Of a DNA stretch of 64,000 nt, positions 23,515 to 64,000 are shown one piece after another. The DNA lies in assembly GCF_022045235.1 (NCBI RefSeq), contig NW_027266319.1, positions 12,028,001-12,092,000 of the forward strand, in the 5' to 3' direction. The position numbers and the translations under genes are program-made. Each line of letters opens with the position of its first letter. Within the stretch, counting starts at the first letter, position 1. The stretch is from Haliotis cracherodii. Its lineage: Eukaryota. Under the pieces are notes generated by a model. It saw only the letters and a list, made by a program, of their open reading frames with translations. It made no database searches and was not told where the DNA came from.

Positions 23515-24714
23515 TTATTCATTTGCACCTATGAAATATACCATGTTTATCAGAGCTGTTAGAGCGAAGAATGTGATGAATGAAATCAAGTTCAACCTTT
23601 GTACGATTTCGTCACAGGCGTCTCTTGTTATGGCTGATATTTCATTGGTTCCATTCTTTGGTTCATGTTCAGCCGTTTCCACTCTGCCATTTGTCCCATT
23701 AACACATCGCAGCCATCTTGGAATGCCCTTCCCACTCTTCAGGTGATTGTGAAGTGCCAGCATGAAGAGTATGACAAAACATGTTAGCGTGCTGATCAAC
23801 ACAAGCAGTGTGACATAGACACTGAAGAAACACAGGTGGTCGGAGTTCGCTGGTAGGTAGGAGTTGATGAGGGTGAGAAACACTGCATATGACAACAGGA
23901 TGGAGACACACAGGGACATCTTCTCTCCGCTCTCCTCGGGCAGCAGGAAGGCGAAGGTGTTGAGGAAGGACAGGAACACGACAGGCAGGATGTTGTTGAG
24001 GATGTAGAACATAGTTCGTCTCTGCAGGGTTAAGGTCGCCGTGGCTGGGGTCTGATTCAGCCCTTTGACGCTGAAATTTTTAAGCGCAAATGTCGCTTCT
24101 ACAAGATCCCACTCTCCATTCTCCTCAAACAATTGAAGATCAACATTTGGGGTACTCACAATGACATCTTCTCCGCTAAACGCGGTCACAGAGGCAGACA
24201 TGCTTATGAAGCATACCTGCTGATCAAAGGGGAACTGTTTGATGTTTACCTTGCAGCGAGTATCTAGTCGACCATTGTAGGTATACGAAACATACCCACT
24301 GTTGTGCACGATGACCTTGTCCTCCTTATCTTTCATGTGTTTCACATCCGACACTGTGTTGTGGAATTGAATAGATGGCGACCAAACATCACTGATCTGT
24401 AGAAAAAAACTTTCTGGACTGTCATCTGTTTTGTTCCATTTTAGGAAACGATCATACCACATCGTATAAAACCACACTTTTGTGCTTAAGATTTCATCCT
24501 TTTCTTCAAGGCTGATTATGGACACTAAGCCGAAGGTCACGTTAATAGTTGTTACTTCAGAGCGTTCGATCACTGGGCGGACCTTTGGGTCATAGAACTT
24601 GGTTAGATTGGAGATAAAGTATTTATCCTCGTAGGAGTTGGCCGAAAGGACATTGATAGGCCAGCAGGCAACAAGAAGCGAAATGCTTGCAATATGTACG
24701 ACTACTATGTTCAT
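23515..24714 (-). CDS. Atypical nAChR-like Cys-loop ligand-gated ion channel subunit (R1), intronless, 399 aa
   Basis: Signal peptide, YDPKVRP, WSP, Cys-loop CKVNIKQFPFDQQVC, ENGEW, four TM helices, LPEESGEK M1-M2 linker; no vicinal CC. Confidence 0.93.
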   Translation of the reverse strand: MNIVVVHIASISLLVACWPINVLSANSYEDKYFISNLTKFYDPKVRPVIERSEVTTINVTFGLVSIISLEEKDEILSTKVWFYTMWYDRFLKWNKTDDSPESFFLQISDVWSPSIQFHNTVSDVKHMKDKEDKVIVHNSGYVSYTYNGRLDTRCKVNIKQFPFDQQVCFISMSASVTAFSGEDVIVSTPNVDLQLFEENGEWDLVEATFALKNFSVKGLNQTPATATLTLQRRTMFYILNNILPVVFLSFLNTFAFLLPEESGEKMSLCVSILLSYAVFLTLINSYLPANSDHLCFFSVYVTLLVLISTLTCFVILFMLALHNHLKSGKGIPRWLRCVNGTNGRVETAEHEPKNGTNEISAITRDACDEIVQRLNLISFITFFALTALINMVYFIGANE

Positions 24715-26751
24715 GGTGATTGTAAGGGAGTTGGGGAATGGGGTGGTGGTGTCTTCATAACATTGTTAGGGTGCTCAGTCGAAGAATTAGTGTAACCTCG
24801 GTTACACATTAGGTCGGAGTTTCAATTTTATCAGAACCTGACACAGCATGACAATGTCATAGACTCAATACAACATTGATAGGGTTAGGATTCGAAAGTC
24901 ATACATCAACACTTGGTCACAGAGTTGACATGAAGGCTCCAAAATAAGAGTTCCAAAGCCGATTTCAATATCAAATCACATTATAGAATACACATCTTCA
25001 GAAGAAAGTAAGAACGCCAATGTAGGATTTCAACACTAACAGAACCAATATTAACAAGTTTGAGCTCCAGGATGTTATTTCAAAAGTAAGTCGCAGCATA
25101 AACTTCAAACACCATTTCCTCTCACCTCACACAACATAAACCTTTTGTAGACACCCTGTCTGAGGTCCAAGTTGCATATCAACACGTTGCAAGTCACAGC
25201 ATATCAGTTCTTAGACTTCAACTCTACGTCACAGTAGAAGTACGCAGACTTAAGCACAAAGTAGTTCCAACGTAGTACATCATCACTATGCCATAGCATC
25301 AACATGACGTAGTCTTTTAGTCCGAGGTCAAAAGTAGTGCATACAAAGTCACAGAGCAACAACGATATTCATAGAATTTGAAGCCCACAGTTCGACTACG
25401 AGGTAGATTTTACCATTGATCAATACCTCATTGAACACAGGATCGAAGGGTACACTTAGGTCGTAATACATTCAGCCTGTATCCCTGTCTGTACTGTTCA
25501 CAGACTTCCATCACATTAACTGGAGACCTACCGCCCTTCAGTCCTAACAATTCCAACCAGGTACCTTCTCTCATGAGGTATCGATAAAATTATTCTGCAG
25601 TAAACATTACCATTTTAAGGTATTTTTTTTCTGTAGTCAGTGATAGATGATATACTCCGCTTGGGCAGCGGTTTATCGATTTTCGGCCCCTATAGAGAGT
25701 TCTGAGCACACAGTATTGATTCACTCTGAGTTGTCACCCAGTCGCAGGGTATTTACAACAAAACGTTTGTGTACATTGGCAGTTTTCCATAATACTCGAA
25801 ACAAATGCTGGCCCGTTTTACGCTCAATAGAATCTGTTTGGAAAGATAATCCAAATAAGTTTATGGCAAAGATGTCATAGATAGTCATAGTCATGGTAAC
25901 AAGTTGATACACTATATTTCTTTTTGAAAAATATCTGCCAAAGCAGCAAGTTTATCATGGAAGTATGAGGTTGATCAGGGTATCGAATAATCTATTCATT
26001 CTGTGAGTAAGTTGTGAGTGCAAGTCAACCCTATTAATGGTAATTGATGTCACAAAATACCTGTAATGTTAGCACTGGATAGTTAGCAACAAGAATGTCC
26101 CTGTGTGCGTGACAAAAGCTTCATTGTGTACCATCCATCCCCATGAAGCGATAATAAAGCCGGGAATACGTTTGTGATTTTTCCTCCTAAATAATGACTC
26201 TTTATCTAAATATTTGTTCATGATAGGGTGTGTTGCTGTGAACATATAGCTTTCTGGTTCTATTAATGTATTTGACTTCCCTTTCATGTGCGAGTTTGAA
26301 AACAATAAGTGGTTGATGATTTGATCCTGGGTACTTCGCTGCAGTGACAACGTCGCCCTGGACACCGTACTCGCAGACTACATACAGCACTGTTCCATAT
26401 TGACGACTTTAGCAATATGTGACTCCGTGCAGTATCATCTTAAGAAGTTCGTCTTTACAATGCTTGAATGTGTTAGTTCTCAGCTTTACTCACTGTGTTT
26501 ACATTTGCAGTGATACATCAACTCCTGGGCTATGGACATTTCTACATTCACAAAAAACGACCACGTCAAACTTTTTTCAAATGAGAAAGGAGGCTGTCAG
26601 ATATGCATTTGTTTGAATCACTTTCTGACAACCATGAGAGTGGCTGAGTATGCAATTCCTTGAATCTTGAAGAACTTTGACGTATACTTCTTTGTGTTAC
26701 AGTAAGTGTGTACAACTAGTCAGTGAATTCACCACTTATTGTTGGATTACC

Positions 26752-27912
26752 ATGGCATCAGAACATTTCCTTTTGTCCCTATATATCATATGTATGATTA
26801 CATTAACGTCTGCTTCGTACAAAGAAAAGGCTTTCCTGGTAAATCTGACCAAGAACTATGACAAAACACTTCGACCTGTCTTCAGAAGATCCGACAAGCT
26901 GATTATTAGTGTCAATGTCGGTTTGATGTCAATCGTAAGTCTGGATGAGAAGCGGGAAACTCTGAGCTGGAGAGGTTGGGTGTCTATGTATTGGCAGGAC
27001 AACTACCTCAAGTGGAACCTGACAGATGACACTCCCAATCTGTTATACCTCCCTGTAACTGATATATGGACTCCGACCTTGTTTCTGACCAATTCTGTTA
27101 CGGATCAGAAATACTTGATTGATAAAGAGGAAAGGGCGGTTATATTAAACACAGGTCTCACTTTCTATACGTTCACTGAACGCCTTGACACGCAGTGCAA
27201 AATAAACATAGGGAAATTCCCGTTTGATATTCAAGTTTGTAAAATTAGCATATGTCCCTTTCATTCTCAGCTGAGTGGGGAGTATATAGCTGTGGGGTAC
27301 AATTCAGTGCTGTTGGACATGTACGAAGAAAATGGCGAATGGATCCTTCTTGATGCTAAGTTGAAGACAGGTGTTATAGATTTGGCTGGATATAAGATTG
27401 AAACAGCTGTGGCAACTCTGACTTTGCAGAGACGAACAACATTCTATATCCTCAACAACATCCTGCCTGTCGTGTTCCTGTCCTTTCTCAACACCTTCGT
27501 CTTCCTGTTGCCCGAGGAGAGCGGGGAGAAGATGTCCCTGTGTGTCTCCATCTTGTTGTCATATGCTGTGTTTCTCACGCTCATCAACTCCTACCTACCC
27601 GAAAACTCCGACCACCTGTGTTTCTTCAGCGTCTACGTCACCCTGCTCGTTTTGATCAGCACACTCACGTGCCTCGTCACAATCTTCATCCTGGCGCTCC
27701 ACAGCCATCTGCAGAAGGTGAAGATCGCCCCAAGATGGCTGACCACCTTTGCTGGATTTAAATCAAATGCTGGAACATCTTGTGAAATCCCCTGCCAAGT
27801 TGGGATGATCAGAGATCGGATAATATGGAGATGTAATGTTTTGGCTTTCGTAATATTTTTCTCGCTTATATGTTTAAGCAACTTCATTTTCTTCATTGCA
27901 GTGTATGTCTAG
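26752..27912 (+). CDS. Atypical nAChR-like Cys-loop subunit (R2), intronless, 386 aa
   Basis: ACCATGG start downstream of a TTTGTGTTACAG acceptor; CKINIGKFPFDIQVC, ENGEW, 4 TM; no vicinal CC. Confidence 0.93.
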   Translation: MASEHFLLSLYIICMITLTSASYKEKAFLVNLTKNYDKTLRPVFRRSDKLIISVNVGLMSIVSLDEKRETLSWRGWVSMYWQDNYLKWNLTDDTPNLLYLPVTDIWTPTLFLTNSVTDQKYLIDKEERAVILNTGLTFYTFTERLDTQCKINIGKFPFDIQVCKISICPFHSQLSGEYIAVGYNSVLLDMYEENGEWILLDAKLKTGVIDLAGYKIETAVATLTLQRRTTFYILNNILPVVFLSFLNTFVFLLPEESGEKMSLCVSILLSYAVFLTLINSYLPENSDHLCFFSVYVTLLVLISTLTCLVTIFILALHSHLQKVKIAPRWLTTFAGFKSNAGTSCEIPCQVGMIRDRIIWRCNVLAFVIFFSLICLSNFIFFIAVYV

Positions 27913-29067: not shown

Positions 29068-29088
29068 GTAACGTACGTAATTCAATGA

Positions 29089-30707
29089 GTTCGTTGGTTA
29101 AAGAAAGCTTTTGATATGGTTGATAGGACAAAATTACTGTATTTAGGCTTGACACAGTGTATCCATGGAGATGTATTTAATGTACTTAAATGTATGTATA
29201 GCAACGTTAAAGCTTCTGTGAAGATAAGTTCATCACATTTTACCGATTTATTTGACACCTCAAGCGGTGTTAGACAGGGATGTGTACTTTCAACGCTACT
29301 GTTTTTTATGTACATAGGCGAACTAGTAAATGTTATGAAGAGTTATGACACTCGTTGTATCTTCATTGACTGTGAAATTGATGAAATAATTTTGCTCTTA
29401 TTTGCAGATGATGTGTCCATACTTGTTGATTCTATTATAAATCTGCAAAACAAAATAACTAGTTTAGAAAGATACTGCTATAAATGGGGACTAACAGTAA
29501 ACAGTCATAAGAGTAGCGTTATGGTATTTAAAAATGGAGGGCCTCTATCACAAAATGAAAAATGGTTTATTAATGGTGAACAGCTTGAAGTGGTGTCATA
29601 CTATAAATATTTTGGTATTCTAATTTCATGTAGAAATATGTTTACTCAAGCATGTGTTACTTTAGCTAAACAGGCAAACAAGGCTCTAGTGCCAATTAAA
29701 AGAATGATGGGAAAATATTTAAACGTAAACGTTGATACATACTTTAAAATATTTGAATGTAAAATGTTTCCCATTTTGCTATACGGTGCGGAAATATGGT
29801 GTACAGAAGTAAGAAAAAGCATTGAAATTATACATACTAAATTTTGTAAATCTACTTTGAAAATAGGATACAAATCTTCAAATGCTGCTGTATTAGGTGA
29901 ACTTGGAAGAACGAGAATGTATGAACATGGTGTTGTGAGAATAATTAAGTATTGGATTAAACTGTTAAGAATGCCTCTGGGTAAATATCCAAAACATTGC
30001 TATTTCATGCTATGTACATATGGTGAACTAGGTTATAAAAATTGGGTTTCATTTGTAAGATATACATTGTTTAGTTATGGTTTCGGTTATGTATGGTTGG
30101 TGCAAGATGTCGAAGACTGTGATGTTTTTATTGATACATTTAAGGAAAAAACAAGAGATTTGTATATGCAAGAATGGTCTGATTGTATATCTAATTCACC
30201 AAGGCTAGATTTATATTACACTTATAAATCCTTACTACAACCTGAAAAATATATATCATCGATTAAGACTGTAAATTGTATGAAAATCTTTAACAAAGTT
30301 TCGATGTTGTCCAAATGATTTTGAAATACATAGATATAGAATGTCTAGTGACCATGACTTTGCTGACAGTCTATGCACTTTCTGTAAAGAAGACTTAGAT
30401 GAAGAATACCATGCACTATTTATATGTCCAGCTTATACCAACTTACGGTTAAGGTATTTGCTCTCGTATTATTATCAATATCCTACCCTGCACAAGTTTG
30501 TATTGTTACTCACAACACATGACGACAACATTTTATTTCAGCTAGCTCTTTATTTAGATAAAATGTTTAAACTTAGAAATTCCAAAGCCGATATTAACTG
30601 AAGCGCTGTGTCACAATATGTCAAATATTATCCAACCATCTGTACTATTGGCCTCAGGGCCTGACTATACGAAATAAGTTCTATTTTGTTCTGTTCTGTT
30701 CTGTTCT
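29089..30707 (+). mobile_element. 5'-truncated non-LTR retrotransposon (RTE-X-like), RT ORF 29116-30318 with frameshifted C-terminus
   Basis: KAFDMVDR, GVRQGCVLS, LLFADD, AVLGELGR, CTFC..EYHALFICPAY; (GTTCT)n tail; TSD GTAATT(C/G)AATGA; clade assignment tentative. Confidence 0.88.
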
Positions 30708-36478: not shown

Positions 36479-36699
36479 ACCCAAACCGTTGGACAGTGCC
36501 AATTAACATGCTAAGATTAATGGTACTGAAAGAACAAGTAATTGGTATGATACATCAAGAAGCAACGCATGGCCACGTTCAAGGAGTTTGGGTTGTAGCC
36601 GAATTACAGTCACCAGACTGATGGTCCGTTATAGCCACACTGGATATATGAGAGTCAGAATGTCATATATTTTTCACATGTCCGATAGAACTGGAAGCA

Positions 36700-37138
36700 G
36701 TTCTGTAAGATTTAGATTCCCATTGGTACCCAACGTCAATGCTAGCCTTCATTAATTCTTCAGGAAACGACAATGATGGTACAACATACACTCACGTCAA
36801 TATTCATCGCTTCATCAAATACACTGTTTAAGACTAACATGAAGGTACTTCTTATTCATGCCTCACACAAACAATGTCCAAACATCGATTTTGTAATTAC
36901 AATTAGCAGTAATATAGCAGCCCACATCAAATTGACAGAGCTATTCAGTTGTTGGTGGAGTACAACCATACAGATAATGACTAAAAGATCCTCGCTTTGG
37001 CACGCCTCTCCTGGATACGAAAAATACCTACAGAATGTCATGAATCATTGCTAATATTCAGTATCTGCGTGTGGCCGTTTTCACTCCTGTTTCTTCAACA
37101 TATGCCACAATGATATAGTTTTGGAAATGTTAGACTTG
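36700..37138 (+). pseudogene. Truncated receptor paralog stub: 5' flank plus first four codons
   Basis: Homologous to the upstream region of R3-R6, ending TTGGAAATGTTAGACTTG, then switches to repeat DNA. Confidence 0.6.
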
Positions 37139-37745
37139 GTACGCTCACCTTTTCGCACACATATGGTATCATCACTATGGTGATTCATAAACGCATGCTC
37201 ATGATATAGTCGGAATAGAACAATCGACTCTGCTTTTGGCAGTGATTTCTTATGAATGTGGAACGGGTTTTGTCGCTTTTATTGATAGGCAACAGTCATC
37301 TTGTCCCAATCAGAAGATGTGAGGTGTTTTCCCCAAGTGATATTAATTGTGACAGAACACTGAAAGTCACGGAACTTACCACACTGACATAGTGTCAAAC
37401 ATAAAGAAATTTATGAAAAGAAAACAGAAGTATGTAATGTCATGAACATTCAGGATGTGTGATGTCTGCTTTGCTTACAGGTCGCCATTGCATGGCAGGA
37501 GAACTGCTGTGTGGCGTCAGGTGATGCTTACTTTTGTATGCAAATTGTGTGGGGTGGGTGCTACCGGAAGTCAGGACATGCTTACCGTTTTCGTGAAAGT
37601 CTGGTGTCATCACTGATTTACAGTGTTCTTTTCATATAATTTGCTATTTGCGCTATATGCCAGATGGAATCTGTACTATCGGTTAATCTTAACGAGTTAA
37701 TCCCTTGCATTGGCAATTTATATTTAACGTGATGTGCCCAATATA

Positions 37746-38693
37746 TACTGAACAACAAAAGTTCCTGTGACATTGAATAAGATTTAATGCAAAGTTATGT
37801 TTTTTTACCAAATTTAAAACAATTTCGGTTTGCAACAGATGAAAGACTCATGTAAGTGTTCAAATAGTTAAATTTGCCATACTGACTTCAGAAAAAGCGT
37901 GATTTCATAAAAAGAACATGCCAAAATGTCAATTTACAAATCAATAGCGTGTGTGTCCACCTCTGGCTGCGATGCAAGCAATACATGTTCGTCACATGGA
38001 ATGGACAAGGTGTCGCACAAAGTCCTGTGGGATATCTGTCCATATCTGCTGGACGTCTGGGGGGTCTTACGGCGACAATCCCTGCACATCTGAGGCGACA
38101 ACGTACGGTTTGTAAAGATATTGGTCGAAGGCCAGGGATGCTTCTTGCAGTCACTTTTGCTGGCTGGAGTCGATTTCGTAGGTGTGTTGTTCGAATCCAG
38201 TTGTCTTGTCGATTACTGGTTATGCGTGGCCTGCCACTCCGAAGATGGTCTCTGACTGCATTCGTCTGTTGCCAACGTTCCCATAAACAACAAATAGTGT
38301 TTCTGTAGACGTTAAATTGTCTTGCAACATCACGTTGACTCGATCTTGCTTCAAGCAAACCAATGGCTCGCAGATGCTCATTTTCGGACAGGCGTGGCAT
38401 TTCTTAATATTGAATAATTGCGTAATTTTGTTGTTTTTCCGAGTGGTTTTTGTCAGCACGATGCTAAACAATGCATATGGAATCCCGTTAACGCACGTCT
38501 TTTTTATACCCATTCTTGAAATGCATGGGGCTTGCATAAAAAATCAACCTTTGAATGGAATGCATGCTTTTCTGTAGCTGTTGCGTTTTTGTGACTTGAT
38601 TCAACATATGTACTACAATATTGAAAACCAAACATTACTTATTTGAAAACTACACTAAAATATTGGTGTCACAGGAACTTTTGCTGTTGAGTA
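37746..38693 (-). mobile_element. Internally deleted Tc1/mariner element
   Basis: TIR TACTGAACAACAAAAGTTCCTGTGACA, TA TSD, N-terminal transposase (MPRL..GRPR) from 38400; empty site at ~51170. Confidence 0.9.
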
Positions 38694-39791
38694 TATGTTA
38701 GATATGTTTGGACTTATTTTTTAAAGAATTGAGGCTATACTAAGTAAATGACACGGTATATGTTGATAAGACAAAATTCAATTTCATGTTTGGGATGACC
38801 TTATCATTGTTAAAGGCAATGATGGAAGTTAATAACTGAAATGAACACCCCAGTCAAGAATAACAATCTAAAATAATTCAAAATGTCCATTATTATCTTC
38901 GGAAATATCGCCAGATAAGTATACTGTTTGGTGTTGTGTCTTTCAATGAATGAGAAATATAACATAGTTATGTGAAAATTGAGCAACCAAAGGCTACTCA
39001 TGATGCCCCTGTTTTAAAGGAAGTAGTCTGCCTTTTTATAAACTGCAGGAAAAACTAAAATGTGAAACCCATTTCTGGAATCCATTCTCTTGTGTTTTGG
39101 TTTGTATTTAGCAAGAAATCGGCCTGAAATCTAACACACTCACTTACTAAGTATATTGCCTGTAATAAACGGGAGAAACTGAAAATATTTTGTATAATGT
39201 CTATGTGTTATAGCTAATGTTTACAATTCATTGACGTGACACTGGCGATAATGGATCATACAAAAAATATCATAATATGTCAATATGTTTCACCCGGCAG
39301 AGCATTTATTGTTTGTACACATACGACTGGAAACAATTACTGGAAGTAGTTTTGAAGGATTAACTGTCCATCAGTTCCCAACTTCAAAGCCAACTGTCAT
39401 TAACGCATTAGGAATGTTTTATGCTTGTGTAACATACACTCAAGTCCAGTATTGAAAGTGTTACTAAATGTGCTCCATTCAATGTCTAGGATGTCACACG
39501 ATAGATTCTCTTTTCATGTCCATAGAATACAATGTGTAAACATCGATGATGGAATTTGCAATGATGTAGGTTTGCAACATACAATTGACAAAGCTATTTC
39601 AGTTGTTGATGGAGTACACACATTCAGACAATGACTACACGATCCTCGCATTCGCGCATCTCTCCTGGATACGAACAAAACATTTATAGTGCCATGAATC
39701 ATTTCTAATATCGGGTCACTGCGTGTGGACGTTTTCATTGCGGTTGTCCTATTTCGTCTTCAACGATAACTACACTGACATATTTTTGGAA

Positions 39792-40997
39792 ATGTTTGAC
39801 TTGTGCAGATGTGGCTTTATCCTCCTTCTCTGTCGCCTGACCCTGGGCTCTGTTTCCTACAAAGAGAAAGACTTCCTGGACAATCTCACCTTGAACTATG
39901 ACCCAAAGATCCGCCCCGTCTTAGATGGTTCCAATACGATGGTGGGTATCACAATGGGATTGTCCACAATTTTATCTCTTGATGAAAAACAGGAAGTGCT
40001 CAGTTTTAAAGCATGGGTTATAATGATCTGGAAGGACCAGCTTTTGATGTGGAACATGACAGACGGCATTCCTGATACAGTGGCTATGCCCTTGGTGGAT
40101 GTATGGTCACCTACCATAATGAATCTTGACTCTGTGACAGACCTGAGGTATCTTTATGATGAAACGGATTCTGTGCTTGTCAATAAGGATGGTACAGTTA
40201 TATATTCCTACGCAGGTAGGTTTGACATAGGATGCAAGGTGAATATACAACAGTTTCCTTTTGATCGTCAGTCATGTACTTTTCACTTGCAAACATTCTA
40301 TGCCCCTGTAACTAAGGAATATCTTCAGGTAGCAAACAAGAATTTAAATCTGGAAACATATAACCAAAACGGAGAATTTAACCTTGTCAGTGCATCAATG
40401 GCACTGCGGAAATTCAGGATTCACAATACAGGTCAAGAATGGATAGAGGTGACCATGGTCCTGCAGAGACGAACTATGTTCTACATCCTCAACAACATCC
40501 TGCCTGTCGTGTTCCTGTCCTTTCTCAATACCTTCGTTTTCCTGCTGCCCGAGGAGAGCGGAGAGATGATGTCCCTGTGTGTCTCCATCCTGTTGTCATA
40601 TGCTATGTTCCTCACCCTCATCAACTCCTACCTACCAGCAAACTCCGACCACCTGTGTTTCTTCAGTGTCTATGTCACCCTGCTCGTGTTAATCAGCACG
40701 CTCACGTGCCTTGCCACAATATTCATGCTGATACTACACACTCATCTACAAAGGGGCATGGCTAGTCCAAGATGGCTGCCAATTGCTCTGGGATCAGACG
40801 GCAAAGTTGGGACGACTGAACCACGGATTAAGAATGACGATGTAGCTCCATACCAATCAGATGTGAAAGACAAAGCAAACAAGAAGTTAGACATGAAGGA
40901 TGCGATAATCACCAAATGTAACAGGGTGGCATTTGGGACGTTCTTCACACTCACAATTCTTGTTAATCTGATATTTTTCATCTGCGTGTCTCTGTGA
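39792..40997 (+). CDS. Atypical nAChR-like Cys-loop subunit (R3), intronless, 401 aa
   Basis: MFDLCRC signal peptide, CKVNIQQFPFDRQSC, 4 TM; ATG shared with paralogs. Confidence 0.93.
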   Translation: MFDLCRCGFILLLCRLTLGSVSYKEKDFLDNLTLNYDPKIRPVLDGSNTMVGITMGLSTILSLDEKQEVLSFKAWVIMIWKDQLLMWNMTDGIPDTVAMPLVDVWSPTIMNLDSVTDLRYLYDETDSVLVNKDGTVIYSYAGRFDIGCKVNIQQFPFDRQSCTFHLQTFYAPVTKEYLQVANKNLNLETYNQNGEFNLVSASMALRKFRIHNTGQEWIEVTMVLQRRTMFYILNNILPVVFLSFLNTFVFLLPEESGEMMSLCVSILLSYAMFLTLINSYLPANSDHLCFFSVYVTLLVLISTLTCLATIFMLILHTHLQRGMASPRWLPIALGSDGKVGTTEPRIKNDDVAPYQSDVKDKANKKLDMKDAIITKCNRVAFGTFFTLTILVNLIFFICVSL

Positions 40998-41016
40998 TGG
41001 ACACCATCACTGATAT

Positions 41017-41018
<2 letters not shown>

Positions 41019-41103
<85 letters not shown>
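41019..41103. repeat. (TA)n microsatellite in the R3 3' region
   Basis: Pure TA run, absent from R4 and R5. Confidence 0.95.
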
Positions 41104-41105
<2 letters not shown>

Positions 41106-41259
41106 AAGTCATTGCCGTCATTGCTTCCGTAACTCGTCAGAAAACTCGTTGTAGACAGTGATAGTCAAACCAGAAGGATGAGACGTATTTTATGTGTGTA
41201 TCTTCATCTGAAGGTTACTGATTAAACACTTCTATGTGCAATTTGGTGATAAGACGTTT

Positions 41260-41945
41260 AGGCAAGAGGTAAGCATCCCTTTAGGCACCATTTGTGCTCT
41301 TGATTATCTGTTTGTTTGTTCATATTAATCGGAAATTCTGCTCGGATTGACAAAAACCAAACAAGGGAATTTGACCAAGAAGTTCAACTTTAGCTTCAGG
41401 TGTATCAAGGATCTGGCATGTTTCAATAACTGTCAAATAGCGAATTTACTTACACTTATCTACTCGCCTGAACTGGAAATAAACGAGATCAGTGACTCTC
41501 TTTAAGATTTAGATCTTTGCATAATGATTTAGAGTGGCAAAACACTCTCCAAAAGGCTGTATGACCAGAGGGATGGCTTCAACTTTCCAATAGTCAACAT
41601 TCGTTTTATGTCAAGCAATATACCAGCAGTTCCAGCCTTTGGGGTCTACCATTCTCCACGTTGGAGGTACAATCGAGCATGCTCTTTCAGCGAAGATTTC
41701 AAAGAGCATCATACAACATTCAAGGCATCCGTAAAGCTTTCAAAAGGTTTTATTGTATACATGTTGAGGACATTTCCAATCTGACACACCAATGACAAAA
41801 CATTACCTCCGATGCAATTCCTTTATTATTATTTGTACCATATCTTCTCGTGTATTTTTCAGGTGAACAGTTGACTTGCGTTTGCATGTGTTTGTGACAG
41901 GTGCCATCGGTGTGGTAGGATATGCTCATCGTTTCTCTGTCACCT
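41260..41945 (+). mobile_element. Degenerate Penelope-like RT fragment (paralogous copies ~48040-48650 and ~53500-53750)
   Basis: LYDQRDGFNFPIVNIRFMSSNIPAVPAFGVY..RYNRAC. Confidence 0.7.
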
Positions 41946-43511
41946 GCTATTAACCCTATTTGATACTCATTGATTTGCAATCGTGCAATCGTAATGTTGC
42001 TTTTATTTACACCTCTAGAAACGATTACACAGTACTGAATATTGAATTTCCCTGTTTTGTATATTTTGGGATACTTTAGATTATGGAGCAGGATGTCCCA
42101 GTGATCCAGCGCCACATTTCGATATGCAATGTTCCGCCCCCCGTACATTCAAGGATCAACTTACTGATCTTTGATTGCCAGCTTGCCCTGATTCTGATCA
42201 TTGGTTTGTCAGCACCATACAAATGCTCGTTGATTCCGCCAAATTGGCACATGTGTGGTTTTTAGAAACACTTCGTTTCTGTATACTAGTAGATAAAACA
42301 CTTTCTTAAACACCTGTGGGTGGGAAAACCATTTGAGATAACTGGTATCAAACATGTGTGAGATCAAATTCCTGGTCAGTGATTGGCTACTCCGAGGTGA
42401 TAACTTTCCAGATGGTAAGTCATTAATAGGTTGCTTGTGCTTCAGTCGAATGTCCACCTACGTCTGTGTTGAACGTAATGGTTTCAGAGTGTTAATAGAT
42501 ATAGTCCCGTGTTATGGGTTTTCGGACGCTTTAGAAACGTTCGCTTATCACAAGAACTGTAAAACATCACATTCACTTATTAAAGACAGCATTATCTAAA
42601 AATCAAGCCATCGTCTGAGTATTTACAATGTCTGTTGACACCACAACCCTCGTTATAGTGGGAGTAATTCGCGATAAACATGGTCGTCTGAAAACGTTTG
42701 ATGTCCGAAAACATATGATCTGACGATATATATGTCTCTCCTCTTTAACCCTCACTTTTAAGTTGACCAAAATTCGAAATACATCACGCACACTAAAAGT
42801 TGTGAATTCTGTTGGAATTCCCTGTTCTGTGATATCATCCACTGTCATTTTAGGCAAAGCAAAATTACTGCGGGTTTAGAAATCTAAATATTGGATGTTT
42901 TGTCAAAGGATTGAATTTCAATAATAGCACATTAGTGATCACGGGAATCAGTCTTTCACCAAATCATCATTCTGAAACGTCGCCGAGGAACCTGGAATCG
43001 TTTAGAATGTTTTGGAAAATACCAAAACACGAACGCTGAAGTGCACTTTCCGCCATATTGGATAGTGTCCACGAAAATCACGTTTCAGGTATGCGGGTTA
43101 TGAATATATATTATTAAAATGTCTTTCTGATATTGCAGTGAGTTAAGTATCAAAAATATATATAGTTTTTCAGTTTTGTGTACTGCTGACAGCTACAAAG
43201 GTGAGTGAAAAATATGATGAACATTGGCACAAATCCCTTGCTAAACCTGAACAAAAGATTATTTGATTTCACGATGAAAATCCTTTTGACATGCTTTGAA
43301 TTCCCAAAAAATAAAATGTCTTTCTTTGTCAAACAGTGACAAGACTGGCACGCTTATCTGCTATTTCATTAACAGCTGTGTCTGCTGGGATACATACAAC
43401 ATCATGCGATATACTATTATATTTAGAAGTGAGAGAATTGACTACACTCAAGTTATCATGCAAACGATTCCAGAAAAATCAATTCAAAGAAGAAGGACTC
43501 ACTCTGAAACT

Positions 43512-46619: not shown

Positions 46620-47825
46620 ATGTTTGACTTGTGCAGATGTGGCTTTATCGTCCTTCTCTGTCGCCTGACCCTGGGCTCTATTTCCTACAAAGAGAAAGAC
46701 TTCCTGGACAATCTCACCTTAAACTATGACCCAAAGATCCGCCCCGTCTTAGATGGTTCCAATACGATGGTGGGTATCACAATTGGATTGTCCACAATTT
46801 TATCTCTGGATGAAAAACAGGAAGTGCTCAGTTTTAAAGCATGGGTTATAATGATCTGGAAGGACCAGCTTTTGGTGTGGAACATGACAGACGGCATTCC
46901 CAATACAGTGGCTATGCCCTTGGTGGATGTATGGTCACCTACCATAATGAATCTTGACTCTGTGACAGACCTGAGGTATCTTTATGATCAAACGGATTCT
47001 GTGCTTGTCCAAAAGGATGGTACAGTTATATATTCCTACGCAGGTAGGTTTGACATAAGATGCAAGGTGAATATACAACAGTTTCCTTTTGATCGTCAAT
47101 CATGTACGTTTCACTTGCAAACATTCTATGCCCCTGTTACTAAAGAATATCTTCAGGTAGCAAACAAGTATTTAAATCTGGAAACATATAACCAAAACGG
47201 AGAATTTAACCTTCTCAGTGCATCAATGGCACTGCTGAAATTCAAGATTCGCAATGTCAGTCAAGAAATGATAGGGGTGACCATGGTCCTGCAGAGACGA
47301 ACTATGTTCTACATCCTCAACAACATCCTGCCTGTCGTGTTCCTGTCCTTTCTCAATACCTTCGTCTTCCTGCTGCCCGAGGAGAGCGGAGAGAAGATGT
47401 CCCTGTGTGTCTCCATCCTATTGTCATATGCCATGTTCCTCACCCTCATCAACTCCTACCTACCAGCAAACTCCGACCACCTGTGTTTCTTCAGTGTCTA
47501 TGTCACCCTGCTCGTGTTAATCAGCACGCTCACGTGCCTCGTCACAATCTTCATGCTGATACTACACACTCATCTTCAAAGGGGCATGGATGGTCCAAGA
47601 TGGCTGCCAATTGCTTGGGGATCAGACAGCAAAGTTGGGACGACTGAACCACGGGTTAAGAATGACGATGTAGCTCCATACCAATCAGATGTGAAAGACA
47701 AAGCAAACAAGAAGTTAGACATGAAGGATGCGATAATCACTAAATGTAACAGGGTGGCATTTGGAACGTTCTTCACACTTACAATTCTTGTTAATCTGAT
47801 ATTTTTCATCTGCGTCTCTCTTTGA
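46620..47825 (+). CDS. Atypical nAChR-like Cys-loop subunit (R4), intronless, 401 aa
   Basis: Close paralog of R3; intact ORF. Confidence 0.93.
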   Translation: MFDLCRCGFIVLLCRLTLGSISYKEKDFLDNLTLNYDPKIRPVLDGSNTMVGITIGLSTILSLDEKQEVLSFKAWVIMIWKDQLLVWNMTDGIPNTVAMPLVDVWSPTIMNLDSVTDLRYLYDQTDSVLVQKDGTVIYSYAGRFDIRCKVNIQQFPFDRQSCTFHLQTFYAPVTKEYLQVANKYLNLETYNQNGEFNLLSASMALLKFKIRNVSQEMIGVTMVLQRRTMFYILNNILPVVFLSFLNTFVFLLPEESGEKMSLCVSILLSYAMFLTLINSYLPANSDHLCFFSVYVTLLVLISTLTCLVTIFMLILHTHLQRGMDGPRWLPIAWGSDSKVGTTEPRVKNDDVAPYQSDVKDKANKKLDMKDAIITKCNRVAFGTFFTLTILVNLIFFICVSL

Positions 47826-52129: not shown

Positions 52130-53335
52130 ATGTTTGACTTGTGCAGATGTGGCTTTATCGTCCTTCTCTGTCGCCTGACCCTTGGCTCTGTTTCCTACAA
52201 AGAGAAAGACTTCCTGGACAATCTTACCTTGAACTATGACCCAAAGATCCGCCCCGTGTTAGATAGTTCTAACACGATTGTGAATGTCATTATGGGATTG
52301 TCCACAATTTTATCTCTTGATGAAAAACAGGAAGTGCTCAGCTTTAAAGCATGGGTTTTAATGACATGGAAGGACCGGCTTTTGGTGTGGAACATGACAA
52401 ATGGCATTCCTAATACAGTGGCTATGCCTTTGGTGGATGTATGGTCACCAACCATAATGAATCCTGACTCTGTGACAGACCTGAGGTATCTTTATGATGA
52501 AACGGATTCTGTGCTTGTCAATAACGATGGTACAGTTTCATATTCCTACGCAGGTAGGTTGGACATAGGATGCAAGGTGAATATACAACAGTTTCCTTTC
52601 GATCGTCAGTCATGTACTTTTCACTTGCAAACATTCTATGCCCCTATAACAAAGGAATATCTTCAGGTAGCAAACAAGTATTTAAATCTGGAAACATACA
52701 ACCAAAACGGAGAATTTCACCTTCTCAGTGCATCAATGGCATTACAAAAATTCAAGATTTACAATGTCACTCATGAATGGATAGAGGTGACCGTGGTCCT
52801 ACAGAGACGAACTATGTTCTACATCCTCAACAATATCCTGCCCGTTGTGTTCGTGTCTATTCTCAATACTTTCGCCTTCCTGCTACCCGAGGAGAGCGGA
52901 GAGAAGATGTCCCTGTGTGTCTCCATCCTGTTGTCATATGCCATGTTCCTCACCCTCATCAACTCTTTCCTACCAGCGAACTCCGACCACCTGTGTTTCT
53001 TCAGTGTCTATGTCACCTTGCTCGTGTTAATCAGCGCACTCACATGCCTTGTCACAATATTCATTCTGGTACTTCACACTCATCTACAAAGGGGCATGGC
53101 TAGTCCAACATGGCTGCCAATTGCTTGGGGATCAGACAGCAAAGTTGGGACGACTGAACCACGGGTTAAGAATGACGATGTAGCTCCATACCAATCAGAT
53201 GTGAAAGACAAAGCAAACAAGAAGTTAGACATGACGGATGCGATAATCACCAAATGTAACAGGCTGGCATTTGGAACGTTCTTCACACTTACAATTCTTG
53301 CTAATCTGATATTTTTCATCTGCGTGTCTCTGTGA
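52130..53335 (+). CDS. Atypical nAChR-like Cys-loop subunit (R5), intronless, 401 aa
   Basis: Paralog of R3/R4; intact ORF. Confidence 0.93.
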   Translation: MFDLCRCGFIVLLCRLTLGSVSYKEKDFLDNLTLNYDPKIRPVLDSSNTIVNVIMGLSTILSLDEKQEVLSFKAWVLMTWKDRLLVWNMTNGIPNTVAMPLVDVWSPTIMNPDSVTDLRYLYDETDSVLVNNDGTVSYSYAGRLDIGCKVNIQQFPFDRQSCTFHLQTFYAPITKEYLQVANKYLNLETYNQNGEFHLLSASMALQKFKIYNVTHEWIEVTVVLQRRTMFYILNNILPVVFVSILNTFAFLLPEESGEKMSLCVSILLSYAMFLTLINSFLPANSDHLCFFSVYVTLLVLISALTCLVTIFILVLHTHLQRGMASPTWLPIAWGSDSKVGTTEPRVKNDDVAPYQSDVKDKANKKLDMTDAIITKCNRLAFGTFFTLTILANLIFFICVSL

Positions 53336-56221: not shown

Positions 56222-57766
56222 TACTCACACGCAAAAGAAACGCAAGTCAAGTATGCAGTATACATGTTATTTATTTTCAACAGTAAAGACAAGAAATACT
56301 ATGAGGGCAAGATTGACAAAAATTTGACTGAAGACAGTTTAATGGATTAAAAGACAGATGACATAATTGGGTTTTTTCAAATGTTAAGGGCTTACACAGT
56401 TTCGGGTCAATACCCAAAACGTCAGTAAATACATGGTGTGACCACCATTAGCATTGATCACTGCCACACATCTCCTGTACATTGAGTGGATCAGACGATT
56501 TGTGAAGGCCCTAGGGATCCTCCTGCACACATCCAGAGCAGCTGTGCGTAGTTCATCGGCAGTTGTAGGGACTGGGCGCATATTGTGCAGATGCCTTTGA
56601 ACCTCATCCCAAAAGTGTTCCATGGGGTTCAGATGAGGGCTGAGGGCTGGTCACAGTAGGACACGGATGTTGTGTTTTTGCAGAAAGGTCATGGTAGCTC
56701 TGGCAAAATGGGGACGAGCGTTGTCCTGCTGGAAAATGTGTTGTTGATGTTGTGCAAAAAGTGGAACAACGTGGGGTCTGATCACTTGGTCGATATACCG
56801 CTGAGCAGTGACGCCGTGTCCCCGACCTTGACCAACATTCAGAAGTCACATGGGTCCAAGTCTCGCATTAAGTCTAATTCCTGCCCATATCATGACGCTA
56901 GGTCCACCCCATTTATCCCTTTCCACAACGTTTCTCTCAGGGAAACGATCACATCAACGCCGCCAAATTCTGACTCTTCCGTCTGCATGGGAGACACAAA
57001 AGCGATTTTCATCAGAGAAAATGACACGCCTCCACTCACGATGACGCCAATTGTGATGACCCTGTGCCCACTGAAGTCGTGCTTGTCGATGCCGTGGTTG
57101 GAGAACAGGACGACGTGCTGGTCGGCGACATCTGAGGTTGTTGGAACGGATACGTCGGATCACAGTGTCCCGGCTAATGTGTCGATTATGTGTTCCTATG
57201 GTCTGTCGAGCACTTTCACTTGCAGCTAGGAACGGATGACGCTGGTGTTGACGGGTAATCTGCCGATCATGTCGAGGTGTGGTGACCCTAGGACGACCGC
57301 TCCGAGGAAGGTCATCTGTGGTCTGTGTAGCATTGTATCGATGCAGGAGACGGTAAATTGTGGGTATGTTAACGTTGAAATGACGGGCAACATCTTCGAC
57401 AGACTCTCCAGCTTCCAAACGTCCGATAGCCTGGTTTTTCTGAATTTGAGTAAGGCGTGGCATTGTTGACCAAGGAGTGGTTGGTCCAAGAATCGGCAAC
57501 AGTTCTATACCCAATACAGTTCGTGACAGTTCGTGCATTTCCGATTTCGCGAGAAATGGGTGCATGATACCCACATATTCATTGAAATGGTGCGTTTTGG
57601 AGATTCGTTTTTTATGTTGCGTTTTTACTCGGGGCTTCCAAAATGCAACCAAAAATATTGATAACACCATCAGGCTTCACTACATGCTAAAACTCGTATC
57701 AATTTATGGTTCCGTGTTTGTTACCTATTAGCTTAAAGCAACTTGCGTTTCTTTTGCGTGTGAGTA
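56222..57766 (-). mobile_element. Tc1/mariner element, full length, disrupted transposase (from 57463)
   Basis: Perfect 26-bp TIR TACTCACACGCAAAAGAAACGCAAGT, TA TSD; MPRL, GRPR, FSDEN, stop at 56954, NPMEHFW, GGHT. Confidence 0.93.
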
Positions 57767-59353: not shown

Positions 59354-59354
59354 A

Positions 59355-59810
59355 CTTTTGAAGATACTTTTGAGATACAATCGAGCATGCTCTTTCTACT
59401 AAGATTTCAAAGATCGTCATACAACTCTTGCTCAGAAGTTGTTTTATCAAGGTTACACCATTCAAGGCCTCAGAAAGCTTTTTAAAAAAATGGTATGGTG
59501 GACGCAAATTTAACAAATTTAACGATGAAAAAATATGTCCGATGCAATTCCTTATTTTCATTTGTAGCAAATCTTCGCGTTTTGTTTTTCCGGTGAACAA
59601 TTGACTTGCCTTTTCAGGTGTTTGTGACGGTTGCCAGCGACAACAGTATGCTTACCTATTCGCGAACAACTGGTATCCTCACAAATTCATAGTGATTCAT
59701 GAACACATGTACACCACATACTAGTAGTCGGATTCTCTCACAGTCGACTATGTTTTTGACAGAATTTTTTCTTATGAATATGGAAAGGATTTAGTCGCTT
59801 TTATAAAATA
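59355..59810 (+). mobile_element. Penelope-like element 3' fragment
   Basis: LRYNRACSF..DFKDRH..LAQKLFYQGY. Confidence 0.65.
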
Positions 59811-60559
59811 CAATTTAATCTCCAAAATGAAAAATAACCTTTCCTCCTGTGACATGCAGTTCAAAGAGCCTACATGGTCACTTAATGAGTTTCACCAAGC
59901 TAAATAGAAAACAGTCACATGATAAAAACTTTTAACACCTAATCCAGAACAAGCCAATATTTAGTTTTACTAAACCAGAATAAGTTTCCACAGGCGATAA
60001 AAACTACGAGTTGAAATACCTCACGAATGTACTAGACCTGAATGTCAACATAGTTGACATTACAACTGCAATACAACTGCAAAACAACTGCAAAACACTA
60101 CCACCAACACAACATCATTTTTATATTGCTTCAGACCTGTATACTTTATATTTCAGTTTCAAGAAACAATTAAGTGAGTTGTGACGCTACTTTAACAGAA
60201 TTTGTGTGACATAACTATGTGCCTGCTGTGGTAATGGTCGAAGACGTTTACCACTTTGGTGAAATCCACGAACATGGGGATGATGCTGACAGACCTAGAA
60301 ACCTAATCCATGATTCAAACCCACAATCATATATTTCTGGTGTGTCCATGGAAAGCAACTCGACACAGCGAATACCGGCGCCTTAGACGACTGTGTCACT
60401 CATGCCACCACGAAACAATATACAACCCCATTACCCAATGACACCAATAAGTAAGGATGTTTCTGATAATACAACGAAACCTTTAATACTTGATGCAAAA
60501 TCGCTCTGCTATACAATCACTGATGATTAAAACGCTGTGATCTGATACTGACGACAATA

Positions 60560-62817
60560 TATAATTGTATACAATTTTGCAGAAAATACAAACCTTATAA
60601 AGACCCTGATTTGGTTTTAGAAAGCACTCCTATTAAAGGTGTAAAAGAGGTTCTTGGGTATTATTGTTTATCTCCATTTAACCTTTTTACCACACATAAA
60701 ACATTTGAAAAATAAATGCCTGAAGGCACTTGACCTTCTGAAAGTCGTTTCAAGTTCAAAGTGTACAGGGCACTCACTTATACGCTCTAAACTGGATTAT
60801 GGCTTCATCATCTATGGGGGACTCTGTAAAAGTAATTTAAAAGTATTAGATAGTATTCATCAGGCTTTGCCTCGGAGCCTTCAGAACATTCCCTCTTAAT
60901 AGCCTGTATGTGGAAGCTGATGACCCATCGCTAAAAACAACGTTGCATTAAATCATCTTTACAGTATATTTCTAAGCTGCATTCTGATCATTCTAATCCA
61001 GCCTACGAATGTGTTTTTAATCCTCCATATAAAGAACAAAAATACATCTCTTACTTCACCCCTAGGAATCAGAATACAATCTCATATTTCTGCTTCTCAA
61101 ATTAATCTTGAAAATATAGCCCCAGCCAAACTCCTGTCTTCACCACCATGGCAGTTGGTAAAGCCAGTAGTGGATACAACATTAATTAAACTAAAGAAAT
61201 CTGATACAAATCAACTAATTTATCAACAACAATACAATGAATTACGAAGCACATATGATGCTTACAAATCTATATTTACAGATGGATCCAAGGATGGTGC
61301 CGCAGTTGCCAGTGCCACCTTCATTGGATCCAGGACTATTTCGTCAAGACTACCGGATAATTGTTCCATTTTTACAGCTGAATCACATACTATATCAACA
61401 ACACTAGAGTACATTTGTAAACAATCGAAACATAAACAATTTATTATAGTTTCAGATTCTTTATCCTGTCTTCAGACAATACAAAATCAGTCTTGCAAAC
61501 ATCCACTTTTAATCGAAATCCTTGAATTATATAATGATCTTGCTACTGGCCAATACGACATCGTCTTTCGTTGGTTACCCAGCCATGTTGGAGTCATTGG
61601 TAACACAATGATCGATGCGTCTGCAAAAGCACCTCTTTACACATCCGTGACACCACTTTTAATTCCATACAGTGATTATAAACCTGTGATCAGATGCTAC
61701 ATCCGAGATCTTATGCAACAGAAATGGGACACCCAAGTAGGTATCAACAAATTACATGAAATTAAACCAAATATCGGTTACACCTACTTGGGTTGTCAGT
61801 CCAGACTTGAAGAGGTAATTTTACGACTATGTCGTATTGGCTATAGTAGATATACTCACGAATATTTATTGAAAGGTGCAGATCGTCCATTTTGTATCCC
61901 TTGTGATGAGAGAAAATCACGGTCAAGCATGTCCTGCTTGACTGTATTGATTTTGCCATCACAAGGGATAACTATTTCACATCATCATCTCTCAAAGATC
62001 TTTTTAATAATATTACTTCTCTTTTAATTATTGGGTTTTTAAAAGAAATAGAATTGTATAATAATTTTTGATAATGTCTTGTATAAAATAAATGATCTTT
62101 TAAAATTGGTAGAATGAATTTATATCTGAGTTTGTTACTGACTGTATCCTCAAAAGGGGGTTGACGTAGTGAAAAATAATTGTCCCCCTGAGAGGATATC
62201 GTAAGTCCATGTCATTCAAAGAATATTTCTGCTTATTACTCCTTTAAACGTAGAATATTTGTAATTTTATTTGTTGCTAACTTTGCGTACAATCGCCAGG
62301 TGCTGAACGAATGATGTAAATCCTGCTGGGTTCCATGCAGGTTGCAAAGGTACTGTAAGTCCCCATGGTCCCCCCGACCCGTGAAGATCCGGGGTAGAAT
62401 AGGTCTTCAGCAACCCATGCTTGCCGTAAAAGGCGACTAACGGGATCGGGTGGTCAGGCTCGCTGACTTGGTTGATGCATGTTATCGATCCCAATTGCGT
62501 GGATCGATGTTCATGATGTAAATCACTGGATTGTCTGGTCCAGACTCGATTATTTACAGACCGCCGTCATATAGCTGGAATATTGCTGAGTGCGGCGTTA
62601 AATAACAACCAAACCAAACCAAAACCCCATGGTCCTCAGAATGGTGGTCTACCTTCAGTTGCTGGCGATCTAGAGCCCGTTTTTATCTTGTATTGTAACG
62701 TATAGTGCCATCCTTTTTTTATGATTCCATACTAGTTTGATATCTTTTTCTGTGAGAAGTCTAGTTATTTTACTGTCATTTGTTGGCAGGTTTTTCAAAT
62801 GTTCACTCACTCACTCC
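60560..62817 (+). mobile_element. 5'-truncated, degenerate I/Nimb-clade LINE with RNase H domain
   Basis: LIRSKLDYG, IFTDGSK, SIFTAE, SDSLSCL, WLPSHVGVIGN, RIGYSRYTHEYLL..CIPC; frameshifts. Confidence 0.85.
62372..62624 (+). mobile_element. SINE family B, full length, inserted in the LINE 3' UTR
   Basis: 11-bp TSD CCCCATGGTCC. Confidence 0.9.
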
Positions 62818-63304
62818 TAACATATACGATTAAACATGGTTATTAGAAGTAGTTTTGTAAAAGCTAAATTCATTATTGCTTTAGCAAATAACAATGATGG
62901 TTCAACATACACTCACATGAATATTCAAAGCGTTAACAAATGTGTTCCATGCAATAAGATGACATAATTATAACATAACGTGATTGTATTCATGTCTTAC
63001 AATCGTACAAACCACTCTGCTTTAAGCAGAGAAGTTTTGTTGCTTTTATTTACATATACAATGTCCGAACATCGATAGTGTAATGACATTCAAGTGTTAT
63101 GTTGGGGCGCATCATCATATTGACAAAGCTATTCAGATGGTGATTGTGAAATTCAGATAATGACTAAACGGTTTCTCTTGGATACGAACAATACCTTTGT
63201 AATACTATACATCATTTCTAATATTGAGTCTCAGCGTGTGGCCGTTTCCATTGCAGTTGTGCTGTTTCTTATTCGACGTTAACCACCCTGACATAGTCTT
63301 GGAA

Positions 63305-64000
63305 ATGTTTGACTTGCACAGATGTGTCCTTATCCTTCTTCTCTGTCACCTGACAATTGGCTCTGTTTCTTACAAAGAGAAAGATTTTCTGGACAATCTC
63401 ACCTTGAACTATGACCCCAAGATCCGTCCCGTGTTAGATGGTTCCAATACGATGGTGGGTATCACAATGGGATTGTCCACAATTTTATCTCTGGATGAAA
63501 AACAGGAAGTGCTCAGCTTTAAAGCATGGGTTTTAATGACATGGAAGGACCAACTTTTGGTGTGGAACATGACAGATGGCATTCCCGATACAGTGGCTAT
63601 ACCCTTGGTTGATGTATGGTCACCAACCATTATGAATCTTAACTCTGTGACAAACTTGAGGTATTTGAAAGATAATACGGATACTGTGCTTGTCTTTCGG
63701 GATGGAACAGTTATGTATTCCTACACAGGTAGGTTTGACATTGGATGCAAGGTGAATATCCAACAGTTTCCTTTTGATCCTCAGTCATGTACTTTTCACT
63801 TGCAAACATTCTATGCCCCTGTAACTAAGGAATATCTTCAAGTACAAGACAAGCATTTAAATCTAGAAACATATAAGGAAAGCGGAGAATTTCACCTTCT
63901 CAGTGCATCAATGGCACTACGGGAATACAAGACTCTCGGTGTGAGCAGTGACTGGATTGAAGTGACCTTAGTCCTGCAGAGACGAACTATGTTCTACATC
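63305..64000 (+). CDS. Atypical nAChR-like Cys-loop subunit (R6), runs off the window end (absent from the ORF track)
   Basis: Open frame MFDLHRCVLILLLCHLTIGSVSYKEKD...CKVNIQQFPFDPQSC...LQRRTMFYI. Confidence 0.88.
   Translation, partial: MFDLHRCVLILLLCHLTIGSVSYKEKDFLDNLTLNYDPKIRPVLDGSNTMVGITMGLSTILSLDEKQEVLSFKAWVLMTWKDQLLVWNMTDGIPDTVAIPLVDVWSPTIMNLNSVTNLRYLKDNTDTVLVFRDGTVMYSYTGRFDIGCKVNIQQFPFDPQSCTFHLQTFYAPVTKEYLQVQDKHLNLETYKESGEFHLLSASMALREYKTLGVSSDWIEVTLVLQRRTMFYI

Follow-up and report, generated by a model that had tools for sequence, protein, structure and literature searches.

Molluscs have massively expanded their nicotinic acetylcholine receptor (nAChR) genes. Jiao et al. 2019 (BMC Genomics 20:937; PMC6896357) describe expansions that are intronless or intron-poor, tandem and mostly lineage-specific, with a highly diverse ligand-binding domain (LBD) and with many members devoid of the conserved acetylcholine (ACh)-binding residues. 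Lottia and Aplysia were included in that survey; Haliotis was not. A preprint from 2026 on MolluscaGenes (PMC13174522) distinguishes a mainly cephalopod clade of chemotactile receptors (CRs), a CR-like clade with gastropod members, and divergent clades in which binding residues are replaced. For the divergent gastropod clades it considers a possible contribution to ionotropic chemosensation; its main text does not mention Haliotis. The cephalopod CRs, represented by CRT1 of octopus and CRB1 of squid (van Giesen 2020, Allard 2023 and Kang 2023, as cited in PMC11526382 and PMC10338036), are intronless nAChR derivatives that have hydrophobic molecules as agonists and show diversifying selection in the binding pocket (PMC11526382). 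Another lophotrochozoan relative, the orphan homopentamer Alpo4 of Alvinella pompejana (PDB 8bx5), has no Cys-Cys pair and is reported to be gated by neither ACh nor serotonin (PMC10338036). Our literature search found no paper on abalone nAChR-like genes, their expression or chemosensory data concerning them. The present study deals with a 64,000-nucleotide stretch of the Haliotis cracherodii genome (positions 12,028,001 to 12,092,000 of contig NW_027266319.1, here C56; hereafter, the window), which contains the proximal part of a tandem array of intron-free nAChR-like genes.

The array is a new, abalone-specific instance of the mollusc-wide expansion described above. We consider it probable that it is a Haliotis-specific set of non-alpha cation-channel subunits of the nAChR branch, with a ligand other than ACh, a pore kept uniform by gene conversion, and diversifying binding loops. 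According to the mechanism that we propose, each gene would encode, in a single coding exon, a non-alpha subunit of the nicotinic branch of pentameric ligand-gated cation channels. Amino-acid replacements gather in the ligand-binding loops C, E, and F. Gene conversion, meanwhile, would hold the block from just before M1 to the middle of M3 (i.e., the pore together with most helices of the subunit interface) near-identical across three old subfamilies. The outcome would be a common channel module combined with a variety of sensor modules; sharing the former would permit the paralogues to co-assemble. Channel function, a non-ACh ligand, and co-assembly of array members are what we infer from the sequences; for the physiological role, peripheral chemosensation is the foremost hypothesis, and is offered only as such.

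Loci in the window were called from the six-frame list of open reading frames (ORFs) and from a tblastn search of the receptor ORFs against the window. Exactly six nAChR-like loci, R1 to R6, were found by tblastn, with no extra fragments:

23515-24714, minus strand: R1 (A01), 399 amino acids (aa), complete single ORF, subfamily 1; Pfam LBD 2.2e-39, transmembrane (TM) domain 3.2e-14
26752-27912, plus strand: R2 (A02), 386 aa counted from the ATG (ORF open from 26677), complete single ORF, subfamily 2
39792-40997, plus strand: R3 (A03), 401 aa, complete single ORF, R3-type; the copy chosen for the AlphaFold model
46620-47825, plus strand: R4 (A04), 401 aa, complete R3-type ORF, 94% identical to R3
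52130-53335, plus strand: R5 (A05), 401 aa, complete R3-type ORF with Pro at the loop-A position
63305-64000, plus strand: R6 (A06), R3-type, first 232 codons up to the window end

R1 and R2 are arranged head-to-head. Each of the complete genes R1 to R5 is one uninterrupted ORF, running from a Met start with a hydrophobic, signal-peptide-like beginning to a stop codon, and all five proteins match Pfam Neur_chan_LBD (E 1e-32 to 1e-39) and Neur_chan_memb. R6 continues in the genome as a complete 401-aa ORF (C56:12091305-12092507, locus L008). A first-pass annotation of the window, made from its letters and ORF translations, had proposed at least six single-coding-exon Cys-loop subunits, five of them complete at 386-401 aa, in a probable gastropod; ORFs, tblastn, and Pfam agree with this count, and the source is indeed a gastropod, Haliotis. 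R3, R4, R5, and R6 share 81-94% identity with one another; between R1, R2, and the R3 type, pairwise identity is ~51-53%.

The same annotation had recognised a tandem array; this holds, and its extent is larger than could be seen in the window. In a six-frame search of the whole assembly (1.18 Gb, 80 contigs), the array occupies ~12.05-12.16 Mb of contig C56 and ends at C56:12158946, with 14 genes in ~107 kb. It thus reaches ~67 kb beyond the window end, and the window holds six of the 14 genes. The array is made up of R1, R2, eleven intact R3-type genes, and one frameshifted copy, i.e., 13 of the 14 are intact. The frameshifted copy is the last member:

C56:12157746-12158946: A14 (loci L012 and L015), ectodomain 75% identical to R3, open frame broken once, by a frameshift in loop F near residue 183

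The break marks either a pseudogene or a fault in the assembly. At the other extreme, A06 and A08 are nearly identical. No alpha-type gene lies within or adjoining the array. Genome-wide, a search with the LBD model gave 150 scored matches from 456 candidates; at least ~106 of these span virtually the entire LBD in a single open frame, and they are distributed in many clusters. The array is one among dozens of similar clusters in this genome.

Divergence between the array genes is uneven along their length. Sliding-window comparison of R1, R2, and the R3 type gave nucleotide identities of 0.9-1.0 from the pre-M1 LQRR motif to mid-M3 and of ~0.5 beyond, with sharp edges. The block so delimited lies at these positions:

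40452-40688, plus strand: pore block of R3, 237 nt, pre-M1 to mid-M3, residues ~221-299
23800-24028, minus strand: equivalent block of R1
27425-27650, plus strand: equivalent block of R2
47280-47516, plus strand: equivalent block of R4
52790-53026, plus strand: equivalent block of R5

Outside the block, in the ectodomain, intracellular loop, and M4, the three subfamilies show 33-52% protein and ~50% nucleotide identity, and silent-site divergence (dS) is 1.1-2.7 or, in most comparisons, too saturated to estimate. Corresponding values for TM1-M3 are 91-92% protein identity, 88-91% nucleotide identity, and a dS of 0.25-0.5. The tree path from R1 to R3 measures ~1.5 substitutions per site in the ectodomain against 0.067 in the block. 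The 237-nt block is present in 14 copies of 91-100% identity, all inside the array, and its best match elsewhere in the genome is only 76% identical. The R1 and R3 blocks are 95% identical, which is within the 91-98% found among most R3-type paralogues. At the protein level, the R3 block shares 95-96% with R1 and R2, whose ectodomains match that of R3 by 39-41%, against 84-93% with the R3-type proteins of H. rubra and H. asinina, whose ectodomains match it by 67-71%. In an approximately unbiased (AU) test of R3-type monophyly on the TM block, the split was trivially present, with weak support, and dS and path lengths are the measures used instead. Since selection at the protein level cannot keep silent sites so alike, this pattern indicates gene conversion confined to the pore module.

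A second sign of exchange comes from a gene further along the array:

C56:12120714-12121916: A10 (locus L007), in-frame chimeric receptor, 28.7 kb past the window end

The ectodomain of A10 follows A12 (dS 0.07), and from M3 onward its intracellular loop and M4 follow A08 (dS 0-0.03). Site counts (93 matching A12, 52 matching A08) place the switch between parents in M2-M3, inside the homogenised block. The block thus seems to act as a site of recombination or crossover as well. What is new here, the sequences indicate, is a domain-restricted conversion that keeps the pore module uniform across three old subfamilies while the binding loops diverge. We met neither such pore homogenisation nor a chimeric member in the portions of the cited papers on which we rely, and no literature search was aimed at such conversion.

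Residue positions were taken from a HMMER alignment to human alpha7 and tabulated for 13 copies. The Cys-loop pair C148/C162 (13 residues apart) and its FPFD motif (F155-P156-F157-D158) are invariant. The pore is of cation type: all 13 copies have the -1' Glu (PEESGEK; E258) and the 9' Leu (L268). M3 and M4 are joined by a short stretch of ~35-55 residues, and the predicted M3 helix is separated from MA/M4 by ~36. An AlphaFold (AF2) model of R3, with a pLDDT of 73.5, comprises the beta-sandwich and M1-M4. By these features, the array proteins are predicted to be subunits of Cys-loop pentameric ligand-gated channels of the cationic nAChR/5-HT3 branch.

The ACh site is a different matter. On the principal face, the equivalent of the loop-A Tyr93 is H in R1, T in R2, and L or P in the R3 type, and that of the loop-B Trp149 (Cys-loop C+7) is S in R1 and F in the others. 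The vicinal Cys-Cys of loop C is absent (C190 equivalent T/V/A/L/Y; C191 equivalent G/S/T/N/K). Of the two loop-C tyrosines, the Tyr188 equivalent varies among H/R/Y/L/F/K/A, and that of Tyr195 is W in most R3-type copies and P/T/M elsewhere. On the complementary face, the loop-D Trp55 equivalent (W75) is invariant and every copy has L, I, or V at the position of the loop-E Leu109, whereas the equivalents of Gln117 (I/M/S/F) and Leu119 (S/T) are changed. Hence, the proteins possess neither the Cys-Cys pair nor the principal-face aromatic box (TyrA/TrpB/TyrC1/TyrC2) expected of an alpha-type ACh-binding subunit, and they do possess the complementary loop-D Trp. The first-pass annotation was accurate in these respects: the very short M3-M4 loops, the loss of the loop-C Cys-Cys, the replacement of the loop-B Trp by F or S and of the loop-A Tyr by H, T, L, or P, and the retention of the loop-D Trp and of the -1' Glu (ESGE) all hold in the alignment. 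As the principal-face site is dismantled (TyrA, TrpB, and Cys-Cys gone), homomers or array-only heteromers would most likely be gated by something other than ACh.

The pattern of substitution differs between parts of the protein. Among paralogues, the ratio of replacement to silent substitution rates (dN/dS) is 0.04-0.19 in the TM region and 0.35-0.6 in the ectodomain (ECD), which corresponds to purifying selection. Among the eleven R3-type paralogues, the ratio of replacement to silent proportions (pN/pS) is 1.09 in loop E, 0.80 in the intracellular loop, 0.70 in loop F, and 0.55 in loop C, against 0.13 in TM1-M3, 0.06 in the Cys-loop, and 0.05 in loop B. Replacement and silent states number 51:20 in loops C, E, and F together and 28:35 in the remaining ectodomain (odds ratio 3.2, Fisher p=0.0016). 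Variation among R3-type copies peaks in loop C:

40380-40463, plus strand: loop C of R3 (beta9-beta10 hairpin, residues 197-224), without Cys-Cys

Here 18 of 28 columns vary among R3-type copies, and nucleotide identity falls to 0.58-0.76 from ~0.9 elsewhere. Loops C, E, and F form walls of the orthosteric pocket, and the replacements in them would fit a diversifying ligand recognition. The constraint on core and pore, the 13 intact ORFs among the 14 genes, and conservation across species argue that the array genes are functional. A pseudogene or artefact reading was rejected on ORF integrity, dN/dS, and cross-species conservation.

The close relatives of the array are abalone proteins. The best database matches are to H. 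cracherodii itself (91%) and to three congeners, H. rubra, H. asinina, and H. rufescens. Among 8842 matches in a library of 1.8 billion representatives, identities of at least 47% occurred in Haliotis only, and the next matches dropped straight to ~30-39%. In a tree of 131 proteins, the 13 array members and the proteins of H. rubra, H. asinina, and H. rufescens form one clade with 100% local support, in which R1 and its H. rufescens orthologue, P0010, share 96% identity. Patella caerulea and Lottia gigantea proteins constitute its sister group (support 94), followed by another Haliotis cluster, Babylonia and Nucella, and then scallops. No cephalopod protein is among the 20 nearest relatives named, and the nearest named are all gastropod. 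The best match by sequence among solved structures is human alpha7 (E 8.6e-44), and no cephalopod CR occurs among the 60 best PDB sequence matches. Fold matches of the R3 model gave the following:

human alpha7: Z 28.9, 27% identity
Alpo4: Z 24.6, 20% identity
squid CRB1: Z 22.1, 21% identity
octopus CRT1: Z 21.0, 24% identity

Kinship with CRs was judged through PDB matches, structure-based identity, and the named tree relatives, the trees themselves containing no CR sequences; on this basis, no sign of a special kinship with the cephalopod CRs emerged. The first-pass annotation had entertained a sensory expansion possibly shared with cephalopods and had seen a candidate family new outside that group. 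Its molecular description (intron-free, tandem, ACh box dismantled, cation pore) survives; its claim of novelty does not, as such expansions, including those of gastropods, are already described (PMC6896357; PMC13174522), and the suggested kinship is not supported by these comparisons.

Several observations weigh against the explanation that we prefer. The conversion is inferred within one genome, and the cross-species comparison is at the protein level only. The pN/pS values near 1 in loops E and F are equally compatible with relaxed constraint on surface loops. The retained loop-D Trp and loop-E Leu109 equivalents could provide a complementary ACh-site face together with an alpha subunit encoded elsewhere. 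None of the sequencing runs containing the gene is recorded as RNA. Contigs from four runs, which are only guessed to be RNA and come from other organisms, lie on 40192-41010 (the conserved 3' half) alone; they have a depth of 2-5 and diverge by 3-8% from the window, so that low expression in related species is inseparable from DNA. The interspersed repeats flanking R3 (38300-38700 and 41500-41900), in comparison, reach depths of hundreds to thousands, with contigs of all four runs. Lastly, the public protein models at 27319-27834, 39807-39947, and 63911-64000 of the window are chimeric or partial. P0002, an 'uncharacterized protein' of H. cracherodii (451 aa), fuses the 3' part of R2 to R3-type sequence; P0003 opens with 30 residues coded at 63911-64000, within R6 (residues ~203-232); and P0018 is the C-terminal half of R4 only. 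The intact single-exon genes of the array appear to be under-annotated in the public models.

What the channels would do for the animal can be explained in more than one way. They may be peripheral chemoreceptors analogous to the CRs, placed in the tentacles, epipodium, osphradium, or competent larvae and responding to algal, settlement, or predator cues. We hold this to be possible, though rather unlikely as it stands. The CR syndrome is matched (intron-free, tandem, ACh residues lost, cation pore kept), the expansion is lineage-specific, and replacements cluster in the pocket loops C, E, and F, as is likewise reported for octopus CRs in PMC11526382. The suggestion made for divergent gastropod clades in PMC13174522 points the same way. 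Nevertheless, CRT1 and CRB1 are no nearer to the array than alpha7 is. Jiao et al. 2019 (PMC6896357) report a diverse expression of the expanded nAChRs, and for intron-poor bivalve genes this concerns embryos, gill, gonad, stress, and infection, not sense organs specifically. Moreover, nothing singles out this array among the dozens of similar ones in the genome.

A more elaborate version of the sensory proposal combines it with the conversion data. The genes may encode ionotropic chemoreceptors that evolved independently in abalone, with a pore and assembly cassette that gene conversion keeps interchangeable among all members, a diversifying pocket, and crossovers within the cassette that shuffle ectodomains with intracellular tails, possibly for algal or settlement cues; they would be the gastropod counterpart of the CRs. 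This version is somewhat more doubtful than the simple one, and we offer it tentatively.

Less plausible again is a role as accessory subunits. In this explanation, the array genes would encode non-alpha (beta-like) partners that lend the complementary face of the ACh site to alpha subunits encoded elsewhere and so tune pharmacology or kinetics. The invariant W75, the L/I/V at the Leu109 equivalent, and the canonical pore motifs speak for it. Vertebrate non-alpha subunits are likewise without the Cys-Cys pair. The altered Gln117 and Leu119 equivalents speak against it, and thirteen fast-diverging ectodomains on a homogenised pore would be unexpected for a structural partner. The intracellular loop is very short compared with the long M3-M4 loop of neuronal subunits, and, as noted, the array is not accompanied by an alpha-type gene. 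Finally, that the array consists of silent or decaying retrogene-derived copies, still open only through their youth, is very improbable, as the missing RNA record, the near-identity of copies such as A06 and A08, the one frameshifted gene, and the observation that no or low expression is commoner among intron-poor than intron-rich nAChR genes (PMC6896357) are outweighed by 13 intact ORFs in subfamilies with silent-site saturation of their ectodomains, by a dN/dS well below 1 in both TM and core ECD, by the 96% conservation of R1 in H. rufescens, and by R3-type genes in H. rubra and H. asinina.

The reading of the array as Haliotis-specific subunits with a conversion-kept pore and diversifying loops has consequences of its own. 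A uniform pore joined to divergent binding loops predicts co-assembly, and would lend itself to the building of chimeric constructs for ligand screening. The practical gain is a full map of an under-annotated 14-gene array. If the channels are environmental sensors, ionotropic chemoreception of the taste-by-touch type would be a recurrent outcome of molluscan nAChR expansion rather than a cephalopod invention, and the array would supply candidate receptors for the settlement and feeding cues of abalone.

The spacers reveal how the array may have grown. In a blastn self-comparison of the window, the upstream flank of R3 (38966-39791, plus strand) is ~95% identical to the R4 locus over 826 bp, and the downstream flanks of R3 and R4 are 85-97% identical; the duplicated R3/R4 unit measures ~6-7 kb, roughly 36657-43219. 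Because the flanks are shared, the duplicated unit would be genomic DNA rather than a new retrocopy for each gene. We therefore propose, with the same reserve, that the array expanded through segmental duplication, at the DNA level, of a ~5-11 kb unit in which the gene was already intron-free. Mobile elements lie between the receptor genes, together with an RNase H ORF:

29116-30318, plus strand: reverse-transcriptase ORF of a retroelement in the R2-R3 spacer; Pfam RVT_1 8.2e-13
56384-57670, minus strand: Tc1/mariner transposase remnant inserted in the R5-R6 spacer; Pfam HTH_Tnp_Tc3_2 1.4e-13

Other features of the window lie ahead of the array. Two further Tc1/mariner-type transposase ORFs or remnants (Pfam HTH_Tnp_Tc3_2, DDE_3) are found at 1674-2612 and 8235-9050, both on the plus strand. 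The minus strand at 11721-14588 has one unbroken ORF of 955 aa for a GH31 alpha-glucosidase that is complete and bears a trefoil domain at its N-terminus (Pfam Glyco_hydro_31_2nd 3.3e-117). Such a large single coding exon is unusual for an animal gene of the acid-alpha-glucosidase type, and the gene may be a retrogene. Positions 16000-22000 show a strong GC skew (0.26-0.30). Two long repetitive ORFs without a Pfam match are located at 18076-18933 (minus strand) and 21218-21943 (plus strand), the latter with a DVDKVNSKND-like acidic repeat and a basic tail.

Placed among the known systems, the array shares with human alpha7 the Cys-loop, the -1' Glu, and the 9' Leu. In contrast to the array genes, alpha7 has the full aromatic box and the Cys-Cys pair, a long M3-M4 loop, and many introns. 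Alpo4 differs from the array in keeping the key aromatic residues, including the loop-B Trp, and in having no tandem arrangement, and its identity to R3 is the lowest of the four fold matches. As in the expansions described by Jiao et al. 2019, the array is intron-free and tandem, has degenerate ACh-binding residues and diverse LBDs, forms a lineage-specific (Haliotis-only) clade, and belongs to a genome with many copies. A protein of Lottia gigantea falls in its sister clade, and Lottia was among the genera of that survey. With the divergent gastropod clades of PMC13174522 it has the substituted agonist-coordinating residues in common. The cephalopod CRs have demonstrated sensory expression and hydrophobic agonists. 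Like the array, they are derived from nAChRs, intron-free, and arranged in tandem, have lost the ACh residues, retain a cation-type pore, and concentrate replacements in the binding pocket. An intron-free ancestor common to the array and the CRs may lie deep in the molluscs.

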